Positions 904-5,746 of a DNA stretch of 5,746 nt are shown here, one piece after another. How positions within the stretch are numbered: position 1 is the first letter of the stretch; every line of letters starts with the position of its first letter. The translations under genes and the position numbers were made by a program. The notes under the pieces are model-generated. The model did not search any database and was not told the DNA's origin. It worked only from the letters and a program-made list of their open reading frames with translations. The DNA lies in the NCBI RefSeq assembly GCF_006345805.1, contig NW_021829499.1:1-5746 (forward strand), read 5' to 3'. The stretch is from Octopus sinensis. Taxonomy: Eukaryota.

Positions 904-993
904 CAGAGGGCGTAAGTTATTCGAGGACATACCTTTTTGGGGTTATTGCTGCATTTTTTGCTCACGCTGTAAGATCTGTTTCTGAAAATCATA

Positions 994-1521
994 ATGGCAG
1001 ACCCTCAGCTTACTCAAGAAATGAAGAGGCATGCTGTTATTGTGGTTTTGAAGGCTGAACATAGGGATTTAGAAATATCTCGTTTTTTAAAAGTTGCCAG
1101 ATCTTTCGTCTACAAATTTTGTAAGGAGCTAGAGGCTGAAAATAGAAACTTATCACCAGTATCAAAGCATAACAAGCATTCTAAATGTTCTGAAATCATC
1201 AGAACATCTGAAGTTATCCAGCAAGTTCAAAAGACCATTGATTACAATCTCAGAAAGGCCATGAGGTCAATTGCAAAAGATTTTCATGTTTCAGAAGGAA
1301 CAGTCAGAAATGGTGTCCAGGAAGACATCAGATATAAGTCTTATATGATGAGGAAAGGTCTGTCAGAAAAAGCAGACAAAAATCACTACATCAGATTTAA
1401 AAGGCTCTTAAACAAGCTGAAAACTGTAGCAGAAGAAGAAATGGCAGATGGTTATGTACAGACCCTTCTGAAGTTCCAAGTGTTATGTATACGAAATTTC
1501 CTGCAACAGTCAGGGTTTTAG
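994..1521 (+). CDS. Residual 175 aa ORF: ~150 aa transposase DNA-binding (HTH) region plus an out-of-frame tail; expression unknown
   Basis: Provided ORF track. Two HTH-like segments (LEISRFLKVARSFVYKF and RSIAKDFHVSEGTVRNGV). Residues after M150 (1441) are read out of frame relative to the transposase. Confidence 0.35.
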   Translation: MADPQLTQEMKRHAVIVVLKAEHRDLEISRFLKVARSFVYKFCKELEAENRNLSPVSKHNKHSKCSEIIRTSEVIQQVQKTIDYNLRKAMRSIAKDFHVSEGTVRNGVQEDIRYKSYMMRKGLSEKADKNHYIRFKRLLNKLKTVAEEEMADGYVQTLLKFQVLCIRNFLQQSGF

Positions 1522-1882
1522 GGGTTGTCAGCAACGAAGGACATGTGATACCTCCTTACTTCTTTCCACAAAGCCTTAGAGTTAACTCTGCCGCCTATAT
1601 TGAGGTCCTGGAAATAATTGTTAAGACCTGGATAGACAGTGCATGCAATGGAAGGCCATATGTGTTTCAGTAAGGCCCTGCACTATCACACATGGTTCTT
1701 GTGTCACAGGTAGGGATGGCTGAGACTTTCCATGGTCACATAACCCCTAACATTTGGCCTCCTAATTCCCCAGATCTCAATCCATTGGACTATTACATGT
1801 GGAGCGTTGTTGAGAGAGAGAGATCTATGAACACAACCATAACACCAAATATTCTTTGAAAGCTATCATAGTTCGCAGGTGA
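994..1882 (+). pseudogene. DD37D transposase pseudogene
   Basis: ATG at 994 (cataATGG). Reading frame switches at ~1431-1443, where the expected F-S-D-E-K motif carrying the first catalytic Asp is absent. In-frame TAA at 1671-1673. Second catalytic Asp codon reads GGC (Gly). A +2 slip in (GA)6 at 1812-1823 shifts the frame, after which it reads IYEHNHNTKYSLKAIIVRR* to 1882. Confidence 0.9.
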
Positions 1883-2126
1883 TCTAAACGAATAGGTACG
1901 CTAGGTAAGTGCTATAACGGATTACTAGGGCTCCAAGGTTATAGCTGAGATAGTAGTTATAGAGCCATTGCAGATTTTCGATGCGGCAGATATATAATTG
2001 TTAAAGAGGACAGCAAACATTAAAGCAAGGCAAGCATCTCATGTTGCATACAGCATTATTATTGGAAAAAATTCAGTCTTACAGCTGTTTCTGGGATATC
2101 CCCGACTATGGGATATTCCATCATCT

Positions 2127-2182
2127 GAGACAAATAGGGAAAAATAGAGAAAATATTTTCCCTATTTATCCTTATTTGTCTC
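2127..2182. repeat. Fold-back inverted repeat built from ~10 bp units
   Basis: AAATAGGGAAAA (2132-2143) pairs with TTTTCCCTATTT (2156-2167); GAGACAAATA (2127-2136) pairs with TATTTGTCTC (2173-2182). Confidence 0.85.
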
Positions 2183-2184
2183 TA

Positions 2185-2283
<99 letters not shown>
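2185..2283. repeat. (ATAG)24 perfect tetranucleotide (GATA-type) microsatellite
   Basis: 96 bp of uninterrupted ATAG (2185-2280) plus ATA. Confidence 0.99.
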
Positions 2284-2355
2284 TGTGCGTGTGAGTATGC
2301 AAATATCTGTGATCTACGAAAATTAGCTAAAATGCATAACTCGGTGTTCAGTGGC

Positions 2356-2435
2356 ATGTATGTATGTACGTATGTATGTATGTATGTATGTATGTATGTA
2401 TGTATGTATGTATGTATGTATGTATGTATGTATGT
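2356..2435. repeat. (ATGT)20 microsatellite with one ACGT variant
   Basis: Directly visible tandem repeat. Confidence 0.99.
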
Positions 2436-2436
2436 A

Positions 2437-2636
2437 GGAGGATTTAAACGACATGCAAAGGTACATGAAGCCCAGTTACAACTACAGCCGGCTATTACCG
2501 GTAAAGGTTTTAGCTGCCAATTCTGTACAAGACATTGTAGATCTTTAGCTGGGCTAAAAAGTCACATTCGATCACACCACCAGTAACAGTTTAGTTTCGT
2601 GCAATGGCCATACTCGATAACGAGGGGGCAGCCATA
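2437..2636 (+). mobile_element. 5'-truncated 3' end of a non-LTR retrotransposon (probably RTE-like LINE) with a C-terminal C2H2 zinc finger
   Basis: 2437-2586 reads GGFKRHAKVH-EAQLQLQPAITGKG-FSCQFCTRHCRSLAGLKSHIRSHHQ*, i.e. half a finger plus one complete C-x2-C-x12-H-x3-H finger. It is followed by a ~50 nt 3' UTR and an (ATGT)n tail. A terminal finger, short UTR and microsatellite tail are typical of RTE-clade ends. Alternative: remnant of a host C2H2-ZNF gene, but the linker is not TGEKP. Confidence 0.7.
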
Positions 2637-2795
2637 ATGCATGTATGTATGTATGTATGTATGTATGTATGTATGTATGTATGTATGTGAGTGTGTGTGC
2701 GTATGTATGTGTGTATGTGTGTATGTATGTATGTATGTATGTATGTATGTATGTATGTATGTATGTATGTATGCATGCATCATGTATGTATATGC
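2637..2795. repeat. Compound (ATGT)n/(GT)n microsatellite, probable LINE tail
   Basis: (ATGT)12 at 2641-2688, a GT-interrupted middle, then more ATGT units decaying to ATGC. Confidence 0.97.
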
Positions 2796-3238
2796 AATTG
2801 TCCCTGAACGGGATTGAAATGTACTCGTGTTAGGCTTATTGCTGGCCATAAGAGAATGCTTTCCTCTGAATGCGTAACTAATACACATAACTTTTACTTC
2901 GCATTCCCAATGCCCACATGATTCCTTGTAACAGCGATTTATAAGAAAGAAGCAATAAGAGTAAAGAGTCAAAAAGTAGCAATCACCTCGCAACAGTGTT
3001 TGTGAGGTTGATATGTATGATAAATGATGTTTTAGATGTGTATGCAGTTATATGATGAAGTCTCCTGTCCATTTTGACTTTCGAGTGTCATTTGTTCATT
3101 CAACTAAAAGACCTGTTCGTTGAATAAGCGACGGAATTCGTCGGTTATTCCATAAATATGTGTACCTTTAACGCAAATTACAGGTAGAATTAGAAAGAAT
3201 GTTACGAAAATGGATATAAATTGCAGTTACATCTTATC

Positions 3239-3581
3239 TTATTTCTTTACAGCCCACAAAGGGTTACACACAGACGGGACAAACAAAGGCAGACAAATGG
3301 ATTAAGTCGATTATATTGACTCCAGTGCGTAACTGGTACTTATTTAATCGACTCCGAAAGGATGAAAAGCAAAGTCGACCTCGGCTCCAGATCTTAACAA
3401 TTATTTCCAGGACCTCAATATAGGCGGCAGAGTTAACTCTAAGGCTTTGTGGAAAGAAGTAAGGAGGTATCACATGTCCTTCGTTGCTGACTGTTGCAGG
3501 AAATTTCGTATACTGTTGTCATATTCTCAGAACGAAGCGGCAGACGAAATACCGCTAAGCATTTCGTCCGGCGTGCTAACG
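3239..3581 (-). mobile_element. tRNA-derived SINE (octopus-type), 5'-truncated and interrupted at its B-box by a 141 bp insert
   Basis: 3239-3385 and 3526-3581 match a cephalopod SINE consensus as I recall it (…AAAGTCGACCTCGGC[GGAATTTGAA]CTCAGAACG…GACGAAATACCGCTAAGCATTTCG…). An 8 bp stem GACGAAAT/ATTTCGTC lies at 3543-3568. The family match is from memory, not from a search. Confidence 0.8.
3386..3513 (-). repeat. Inverted duplication of transposase segment 1487-1632, lacking 18 bp
   Basis: Manual alignment: 127/128 identical to the reverse complement of 1487-1632. One mismatch at 3391 (versus 1627); donor 1514-1531 is absent. Confidence 0.98.
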
Positions 3582-3594
3582 TTGCTCCAAAGGT

Positions 3595-3677
3595 GTCTTC
3601 ATCTACTCAGCTTTCTATATAAGGCTTGGGTACACCCAAGGTTAGTAGGGGAAAACACTTGCCAAGATGCTGTGCAG
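3595..3677 (-). mobile_element. Diverged internal fragment of a second tRNA-SINE family
   Basis: GAAAACACTTGCCAAGATGCTGTGCAG resembles the reverse complement of the recalled SINE body CTGCGTGGCACCTTGGGCAAGTGTCTTC, and the upstream part also aligns loosely. Consensus recalled, not searched. Confidence 0.55.
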
Positions 3678-3831
3678 CTACATATGTGTGTGTGTGTGTG
3701 TTTGTATTTATGAATATTCACTGTGCACCAGCATCTATTGGTTGTTTAGTGTTAATGGCCACCAACAGAAACCGTTTCGAATCCCTGCTCGGAGTCTCGA
3801 GAATGTTCTTTCATATTCCCTCTGTGAGTAC

Positions 3832-3968
3832 ATATATATACACACACATATATGCATATATACATACATAAATGTGTGTGTTATGTGTGTGTATGTGTGT
3901 GTACGTGTGTGTGTGTGTGTGTGCGTACGTGTGTGTGTGTGCTTTGTGTGTGTGTGTGTGTGTTTGTG
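3832..3968. repeat. Compound (TA)/(CA)/(TG)n microsatellite
   Basis: TA/CA runs followed by interrupted (TG)n from ~3872 to 3966. Confidence 0.95.
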
Positions 3969-4286
3969 TACAAGCTAGAGGCAAATAACCCTTCATATCC
4001 TCCCGCCTACAGAAAATTTATATACTTTGTTACTTTTTTTCTTTGTTTCTTTTTTTTTGTTTTCGTCTCAGATTTTGTAGTTTCATTATTTCATTCTTTA
4101 TCTCCAATGTACACGATAAATATGCTCCAGTATGGCCACATCCAAAAGAATGAACAGTGTATAAGAATTCCAGAACACAAGCATATACATTGCTTTTAAT
4201 TTATTTTTTTGCGGAATTCTAGAAATATTTATGTATCTTCGCCCTAATAATGATTCATTCAAGCAGATAACAAACAACACAAACAC

Positions 4287-4294
<8 letters not shown>

Positions 4295-4355
<61 letters not shown>

Positions 4356-4475
4356 CATAGACATAAACATATATATCCGTATATAATTATATATATATAT
4401 ACATACATATATATACATTGTAGGTATACATGTATATACATGTATAATATATGTATATATATGTATATATATGTG

Positions 4476-4535
<60 letters not shown>

Positions 4536-4549
4536 CGTATATATATATA
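4295..4549. repeat. (AC)23 followed by a long interrupted (AT)n tract
   Basis: (AC)n 4295-4340 with one GC variant; (AT)18 at 4478-4513 and (AT)10 at 4515-4534 within a TA-rich tract. Confidence 0.98.
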
Positions 4550-4665
4550 ATACAAAAAAGAAGTATCACTTTAATGGCGTCTTTCATAAGTGTAATGAAT
4601 AACGTTAGCATTCTCACCATTGACTTCTCTTTGACATTGCATTATTTGGCGTATAATGTTTGAAT

Positions 4666-4766
4666 TTCAAAGATGGAATCTAAGAAGAAATTAAATAAGC
4701 CGCTTAATCAAAGGCGGATATAGTTAATAATGGCTACCTCCCTCCGAAATGTCTTTGATCGGATTA
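4666..4766. promoter_or_regulatory. Candidate enhancer motif cluster (3 TCF/LEF-like sites plus GGATTA)
   Basis: TTCAAAG 4666-4672, ATCAAAGG 4707-4714, CTTTGAT 4753-4759, GGATTA 4761-4766. Motif match only. Confidence 0.25.
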
Positions 4767-4848
4767 TTTAGATGGAGAGATTTTCAAAATACGGGGTCCG
4801 ATAAAACATGTTTCCTGGCGACATCACGTCACTGAGATTTAACGACGA

Positions 4849-4931
4849 GACTAGAGAGAACAAGGTGGAGAGAAGTAGAAGGAGAGAAAGAGGGAAAGAC
4901 AAGCTAATAGAGAGAGAGGGGGAAGAGAGAC
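4849..4931. repeat. Purine-rich (GA) low-complexity tract
   Basis: Almost exclusively G and A on the + strand. Confidence 0.8.
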
Positions 4932-5097
4932 ATCAGCGTTGCAAATCATTATATGTTAACAACAGGAAACTGTTGTCATATTCTTCGCCAAAATTATGAC
5001 CCATTTTCATCAGGTCTTGAATGTAGCTAATTGTTAAAGCATTTTTAAGGATTAAAGCGGAAGAAATGAAAGCCTGCTGCGTCCAGACAGCATAGTG

Positions 5098-5128
5098 TGA
5101 CGTCAGATAACGTGTTTACATGATTTAA
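5098..5128. promoter_or_regulatory. Perfect CRE palindrome with abutting GATA, FOX and TGATTTAA motifs
   Basis: TGACGTCA 5098-5105, AGATAA 5105-5110, TGTTTAC 5113-5119, TGATTTAA 5121-5128. Motif match only. Confidence 0.25.
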
Positions 5129-5209
5129 AGCCGATCTCAATCGAAATATTCATCATGTTGCACGCTCATGGTTCTAATCATTTAATGAACAAACTCCACG
5201 TACATATAC

Positions 5210-5258
5210 AAGCACACGTATATACAAATTCGCACTCACACGGAAGCCATACATACAT

Positions 5259-5297
<39 letters not shown>

Positions 5298-5645: not shown

Positions 5646-5707
5646 TTTTGCAATTGAAATTGCATTCTCCATCCATTAGGATCTGAATGAGTATATATAA
5701 ATACATA

Positions 5708-5746
5708 GGTGCAGAAGTGGCTGTGTGGTAAGAAACTTGTTTCCCA
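5708..5746 (+). mobile_element. 5' tRNA-like head of a SINE running off the window edge
   Basis: GGTGCAGAAGTGGCTGTGTGGTAAGAAACTTGTTTCCCA contains an A-box-like TGGCTGTGTGG and matches the recalled head of the same family as 3595-3677. Confidence 0.7.

Follow-up and report, generated by a model that had tools for sequence, protein, structure and literature searches.

What event placed 142 nt of sequence copied from both flanks inside a SINE-like repeat of Octopus sinensis, and which DNA end was extended to make it? We addressed this question in a 5,746-nt stretch of DNA (the window; contig NW_021829499.1 of GCF_006345805.1), to which all coordinates refer and which is taken from one assembly. 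An earlier note on this DNA had claimed that the block is a composite insertion, stitched together from donors on both sides through microhomology-guided switches within a SINE. We compared the window with itself by BLAST and by an exhaustive 13-mer self-comparison after masking of simple repeats, and that claim was supported and survived every test run. Firstly, segment A of the insert (3386-3491, + strand) is an inverted copy of 1527-1632, with 105 of 106 positions identical (BLAST E 9e-56); the sole mismatch is at 3391, which is A where the donor predicts G. Secondly, segment B (3487-3513, + strand) is an inverted copy of 1487-1513 (27/27, E 5e-11). Thirdly, segment C (3512-3527, + strand) is a direct copy of 4969-4984 (16/16, E 2e-4). 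Altogether, 148 of the 149 copied positions match donors on the two flanks and every base of the insert is accounted for. Neighbouring segments overlap by 5 nt at the A/B junction (CTGAC at 3487-3491, GTCAG on the other strand), by 2 nt at the B/C junction (AC) and by 2 nt where segment C meets the SINE (CT at 3526-3527); the SINE/A junction (3385/3386) has an overlap of 0 nt. At this left junction, a k-mer of at least 5 nt common to the end of the SINE and to the sequence upstream of 1632 in the donor was sought, and none was found. The spacers between donors and insert measure 1753 nt (1632 to 3386) and 1441 nt (3527 to 4969), so that the donors lie 1441-1899 nt away, inverted upstream and direct downstream as the note had it. 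The coordinates, strands and junctions that it gave for the three segments all hold, as do the switches at GTCAG, AC and CT; the block is where it was said to be (3386-3527), but its length is 142 nt (140-142 depending on which side owns the shared CT) and not 141 bp.

The masked self-comparison yielded the three donor matches, AT- or GT-rich words close to microsatellites and one 14-bp palindrome, and nothing else; the pattern is thus far beyond chance. For the shortest segment, C, 200 dinucleotide-preserving shuffles gave 0.01 expected matches to the 16-mer even when 2 mismatches were allowed. By our own calculation, an overlap of at least 2 nt is expected by chance at a given junction with a probability of ∼0.16, and one of at least 5 nt with a probability of ∼0.004; overlaps of 5, 2 and 2 nt were observed at three of the four junctions. 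The palindrome, the only other non-simple exact repeat, is a perfect 14-bp inverted repeat at 272-307 (TAATGAGTTAACAA / TTGTTAACTCATTA) with an 8-nt spacer.

We then asked what the site looks like when it is empty. The left part of the interrupted repeat covers 3239-3385 and ends in ...GTCGACCTCGGC; the right part covers 3526-3592 and resumes at CTCAGAACG. Two O. bimaculoides loci had been retrieved through homologues of the transposase described below, and a total of 45 kb of O. bimaculoides DNA was compared. In one of them (L002), the matches to the left part (8711-8843, 83% identical) and to 3526-3586 of the right part (8854-8914, 95% identical) are separated by exactly 10 nt, and the whole stretch 8711-8914 reads ...GTCGACCTCGGCGGAATTTGAACTCAGAACG... 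unbroken. Six O. bimaculoides copies, the one in L002 and five more diverged, carry CTCGGC-GGAATTTGAA-CTCAG or a close variant of it without interruption, which is the empty-site reading (CTCGGC, intervening sequence, CTCAG) predicted beforehand. From these six uninterrupted copies it follows that 10-12 nt of the SINE gave way to the insert: GGAATTTGAA is absent at the insert site, a loss of 10 nt, or of 12 nt if the CT is donor-derived. The six related copies measure roughly 100-200 bp each and were all found within the 45 kb; the host is thus a short, dispersed and abundant repeat. A tRNA-derived SINE head was searched for with ARAGORN, which found no tRNA in an intact O. bimaculoides copy or in the window, and with Rfam, which gave no match; the sub-threshold Rfam matches, including those labelled miRNA, are all microsatellite noise. 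On the minus strand at 3385/3526, the lost bases read (AG)TTCAAATTCC, and a B-box-like GAGTTCAAATTCC can be made out by eye only; if this resemblance is real, the insert would have destroyed the internal pol III promoter of the repeat. The interrupted SINE also has about 14 extra bases at 3284-3297 (AAAGGCAGACAAAT) relative to the closest O. bimaculoides copy, which could be a subfamily difference or a small duplication.

The donors of segments A and B lie within a dead Tc1/mariner (DDE_3) transposon copy at 975-1875 (+ strand), which is 74-78% identical to O. bimaculoides copies at the nucleotide level. Its open reading frames (994-1521, 1485-1673 and 1692-1859) join into a DDE_3-type transposase with an N-terminal helix-turn-helix. 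A search with this transposase gave 94 homologues at a threshold of E 1e-5; the best has an E of 9e-111 and 64% identity, and most carry a precomputed PF13358. Compared with its nearest intact relative, a protein of 345 aa (P0001, 64% protein identity), the copy has lost ∼28 aa around the first catalytic D, is interrupted within its FQQD motif by a TAA stop (1671-1673) and is truncated at its 3′ end; because of this decay, it falls below the Pfam cut-off on its own. Donor A (1527-1632, + strand; ...SNEGHVIPPYFFPQSLRVNSAAYIEVLEIIVKTW) and donor B (1487-1513, + strand) are both in the reading frame of the transposase. Relative to this frame, the insert skips 18 nt net, namely 13 nt at 1514-1526 and one copy of GTCAG, which encode part of VLGVVS. 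These 18 nt are kept in both O. bimaculoides copies and in P0001, hence the gap is derived in the insert; likewise, both O. bimaculoides copies carry the donor state at the single mismatch, which places that change on the insert side. Thus, with donors in frame in the transposase and the skipped bases kept in its relatives, the transposon is the source and the insert is the copy.

Because these donors belong to a multicopy transposon, we had to consider that a fragment of another copy had been imported. Over segments A and B, the insert matches the neighbouring copy at 132 of 133 positions (99%), compared with 83% for L001, 82% for L005 and 75% for L003; the closest copies found, L001-L005, are themselves 71-82% identical to the donor region at the DNA level. 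A four-way alignment shows 15 copied positions at which the local copy departs from the two O. bimaculoides copies; at every one of the 15, the insert has the local state. As all other relatives found are only 71-83% identical, the template is, judging from these identities, the neighbouring copy or a very recent duplicate of that copy. An insert that arrived pre-assembled, as a piece of another transposon copy, as a multicopy composite or as cDNA from a template-jumping retroelement reverse transcriptase, possibly at the time of SINE integration, would be in keeping with the wide distribution of the main donor family, which has relatives in O. bimaculoides and many other animals, and with a host that is a retroposon. 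We nevertheless regard such an origin as extremely unlikely. It leaves the 99% identity to the neighbour and the 15 shared local states unaccounted for, donors on opposite strands would call for two separate transcripts, and a poly(A), a target-site duplication, a TA target and a terminal inverted repeat are all missing from the insert. The footprint of a Tc1/mariner insertion or excision was rejected, the SINE site having no TA and the insert no terminal repeats. A Helitron-type capture was rejected as well (no A/T host dinucleotide, no CTRR 3′ end and no 3′ hairpin), as was an edited RNA template for the mismatch at 3391, which is C to T on the sense strand of the transposon and not A to G.

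The downstream donor bears on the same question. Segment C is copied from 4969-4984 (+ strand), an apparently unique sequence outside the transposon, and the surrounding region 4560-5200 had no match in the 45 kb of O. bimaculoides DNA. As segment C copies non-transposon sequence of the other flank of the same locus, an imported foreign fragment would not carry it. The age of the insert points the same way. It differs from its donors by 1 in 149 copied bases (∼0.7%), compared with ∼6-7% between the host SINE copy and its closest sampled relative (counted by hand on the alignment) and with a thoroughly decayed transposon; judged by these divergences, the event is probably much younger than both elements, which argues against an origin during SINE integration. 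The donor of segment C also overlaps a palindrome at 4951-4981 that can form a hairpin, with a 7-bp core stem ACAACAG/CTGTTGT (4959-4965 and 4970-4976), a GAAA loop and a stability, for each of the two strands, of about -10 kcal/mol; the first base of donor C falls exactly at the boundary between the loop and the 3′ arm. The word CAGGAAA occurs both at 3497-3503, in segment B and 9 nt before the B/C switch, and at 4963-4969, directly adjoining the start of donor C. It is possible that CAGGAAA served as an upstream anchor for this switch (rough chance ∼1e-3, calculated post hoc), and the word and the hairpin boundary may together have helped this third step of the synthesis.

Could the junctions be absent from the genome of the animal and be an artefact of assembly or sequencing? 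They rest on one assembly, in a region rich in microsatellites and repeats, and an independent copy of the locus was looked for in several ways. Ten open reading frames of the window, three of them crossing junctions, were looked up exactly in a protein collection and none was present; a chimeric query made of four locus-specific open reading frames had no match at E up to 0.001; and exact scans of metagenome and prokaryote genome collections with a junction 30-mer and two donor patterns returned nothing, as expected for animal DNA. We nonetheless consider an artefact very unlikely, by the following reasoning. Mis-joins in an assembly graph arise where the joined sequences have k-mers tens of bases long in common, compared with 0-5 nt at these junctions. 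Palindromic reads that stem from a missed adapter yield contiguous foldbacks and not a 106-nt piece placed 1.75 kb from its source, with an internal 18-nt skip and an additional 16-nt piece taken from the opposite flank. Finally, the single substitution fits a real copy that has slightly aged.

We therefore take the insert for the product of DNA repair: in our estimate, with a probability of roughly 70%, an old SINE copy suffered a break, or a stalled and collapsed fork, that was repaired by error-prone, microhomology-guided synthesis on nearby DNA of the same locus. The three copies with their strands and overlaps, the loss of SINE bases, the neighbouring transposon copy as template and the insert as the derived side are direct results; a single event, its place in the germline, the left end as primer, the lengths of single strand given below and the enzymes are inferences. 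The most economical path would have as its primer one 3′ end of the top strand, on the left side of the site (...CTCGGC-3′). This end would first fold back and, in its own single-stranded tail 1.75 kb upstream, copy the + strand of the dead Tc1/mariner element from 1632 down to 1527; such snap-back synthesis in cis would leave segment A inverted. Next, a forward slip over the GTCAG repeat would bring it to 1513 of the same template, and synthesis would continue as far as 1487. After dissociation, AC would let it re-anneal at 4969-4970 on the single-stranded tail of the opposite side, with CAGGAAA possibly steadying it, and 14 nt would be copied in trans, up to 4984, so that segment C is direct. 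A further dissociation and annealing via CT (3526-3527) beside the break on the right side would be followed by gap filling and sealing, with the 10-12 nt of SINE lost. Once the 5′ ends at a break are resected, what remains single-stranded is the + strand on the left side and the - strand on the right side. An inverted copy of the left flank followed by a direct copy of the right flank fits a left-side primer working first in cis and then in trans; a right-side primer on single-stranded tails would give the opposite. A reverse-complement copy of the flank that carries the primer and a forward copy of the other flank are what snap-back and in-trans synthesis, respectively, are described as leaving behind (PMC5068794; PMC4912351). 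For this path, the single-stranded tails would have to be at least 1.9 kb (left) and at least 1.46 kb (right) long. As converging forks expose the same templates as lagging-strand templates, FoSTeS/MMBIR with a nascent strand coming from the left is equally compatible with this path. That the distant segments were physically close at the time of the event, another claim of the earlier note, is true but trivial at 2 kb.

The left junction speaks against the favoured polarity, in that it would be the first priming step and is without microhomology; at least 1 nt of homology is found at about 80% of such priming steps (PMC4032859). The same kind of repair could also have run from the bottom-strand 3′ end of the right side, through CT/AG priming on 4984, synthesis back to 4971, an AC/GT switch to 1487, the 18-nt skip, synthesis up to 1632 and blunt ligation on the left. 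The junction without microhomology would then be the final ligation, and all three priming steps would have 2-5 nt of homology. However, the templates for a right-side primer would be the left-hand - strand and the right-hand + strand, which are the very strands that 5′ resection removes, and this version therefore requires invasion of the duplex of a sister or homologue at 2-nt homology, twice. In a replication setting (FoSTeS), a nascent strand at a stalled fork would hop between the lagging-strand templates of converging forks, and microhomology of 2-12 bp, multiple switches and longer tracts are typical of FoSTeS/MMBIR events (PMC8421209; PMC2621351); if the strand came from the left, however, the templates would be those of our favoured path and the two are indistinguishable by sequence. 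Taken together, a departure from that path in polarity or in setting seems rather unlikely to us.

A stepwise origin replaces the single event by a succession. Here, one 151-nt inverted copy of 1487-1632, with some unknown filler, would have been followed by an 18-nt slippage deletion between the GTCAG repeats, by a separate patch for segment C, or by both. Spontaneous deletions of 18 nt between direct repeats of 5 nt are common, the order of the steps cannot be read from sequence, and the 18-nt gap taken by itself could be such a later deletion instead of a switch during synthesis. Against this, two or three rare events would have struck the same 60 nt while only 1 substitution in 149 nt accrued, and segment C adjoins both segment B and the SINE without unexplained bases, as continuous synthesis predicts. 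Thus, we hold the stepwise origin to be improbable and retain continuous, microhomology-guided repair synthesis as the best explanation.

Which known pathway does this synthesis resemble? The earlier note had called the pattern the signature of polymerase theta end joining and of MMBIR/FoSTeS. TMEJ delins of C. elegans, Drosophila, plants and mammals are alike in combining a small deletion with an insert copied from the flanks, in their patchwork structure with reiterated priming on 1-5 nt, in having cis (reverse-complement) and trans (forward) copies, and in being inherited as variation in natural isolates (PMC4032859, PMC5068794, PMC12426944 and PMC4912351). Our insert shares with them its identity to flanking sequence (148/149) and the loss of 10-12 nt at the break. 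Size and distance differ: TMEJ inserts are usually <25 bp and copied from within ∼20 bp or tens of bp, whereas here the tracts measure 106, 27 and 16 nt and the templates lie 1.44-1.9 kb (1441-1899 nt) off. Inserts made by polymerase theta are generally <25 bp, and patchwork inserts are known among them (PMC12426944); of the C. elegans inserts, 37-44% have their source no more than 20 bp from the breakpoint, 2-3% of delins come from inter- or intrachromosomal sites >1 kb away, and snap-back products are a minor class (PMC5068794). A 106-nt tract and a 1.75-kb snap-back loop are far outside this usual range, and for this reason the polymerase theta part of the signature was worded too strongly; the MMBIR/FoSTeS part fits at least as well. 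Such a tract length and donor distance are atypical for polymerase theta joining and closer to MMBIR-type events.

The templated insertions ascribed to MMBIR/FoSTeS (MMB-TI) are alike in their serial switches at 2-12 bp of microhomology and their inverted nearby copies (PMC8421209; model in PMC2621351), in inserts of tens to >100 bases, in the return to the original template and in the persistence of neutral events as germline variants (PMC8421209). Human multi-template germline insertions are among them, for example event FG-16 with three templates (PMC8421209). The insert described here likewise has an inverted copy of nearby sequence (segments A and B), "nearby" meaning kilobases in this case, and several switches (four junctions and three donor tracts). 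Its microhomology is at least 2 nt at three of the four junctions and 0 nt at SINE/A. The differences are that the published detector covered templates within 100 bp only, leaving donors in the kilobase range uncatalogued (PMC8421209), and that our locus shows no copy-number change or larger rearrangement and has one junction without microhomology. The event falls between the descriptions of the two pathways; we therefore speak of a templated-insertion repair scar and do not commit to a polymerase. It could reflect polymerase theta-like end joining with unusually long tracts, or synthesis of the MMBIR/FoSTeS type. Short template-switch mutations have also reportedly been inferred from genome comparisons by Loytynoja and Goldman in 2017. 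Those scars are said to be alike in that a nascent strand briefly copies the opposite strand nearby, and unlike in that they span tens of bases, usually arise within ∼100 bp and replace sequence in place, compared with 142 nt from both flanks here. Our search of the literature on templated insertions and microhomology template switching found no cephalopod case, in agreement with the earlier note, whose author knew of none. The kind of scar is already known from worms, flies, plants and humans, and the present one is a clean textbook case and a single example.

No function is evident for the scar, which is the record of a mutation, a single neutral change in junk DNA that alters no existing knowledge of repair or of cephalopods. 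As a record it is unusually legible, the donor strands revealing which end was extended and the probable single-stranded extent on each side. Tracts of this length from donors at this distance are hardly catalogued, since the search range of published detectors is 20-100 bp around the break. A genome-wide scan of repeat-rich cephalopod genomes would be cheap and could show whether templating in the kilobase range is common. We think it quite unlikely that the scar is one member of a cephalopod-wide class of long-tract, kilobase-range insertions, in which germline breaks would often be resected over kilobases and closed by unusually processive snap-back or in-trans synthesis. Events of this kind plant inverted repeats near their sources, here a pair of 106-bp arms, 99% identical and 1.75 kb apart. 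ADAR editing is very active in cephalopods and acts on long double-stranded RNA; if transcribed, this pair of arms would form a long double-stranded RNA of that sort.

Other features of the window were recorded along with the insert. At 2437-2586 lies the tail of an open reading frame that ends in a stop and encodes one C2H2 zinc finger (FSCQFCTRHCRSLAGLKSHIRSHH), with weak Pfam zinc-finger matches only; (TGTA)n arrays lie on either side of it (about 2352-2436 and 2637-2775), and it is possibly the 3′ end of a retroelement open reading frame. Microsatellites of the (GATA)n, (TGTA)n, (GT)n/(CA)n and (TA)n types are dense (2186-2282, 2352-2436, 2637-2775, 3685-3700, 3870-3970, 4285-4345, 4380-4550 and 5250-5290). 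At 5692-5746, the window ends within the start of another octopus repeat copy (GGTGCAGAAGTGGCTGTGTGGTAAG...), which is 84% identical to positions 171-225 of the O. bimaculoides locus L001.
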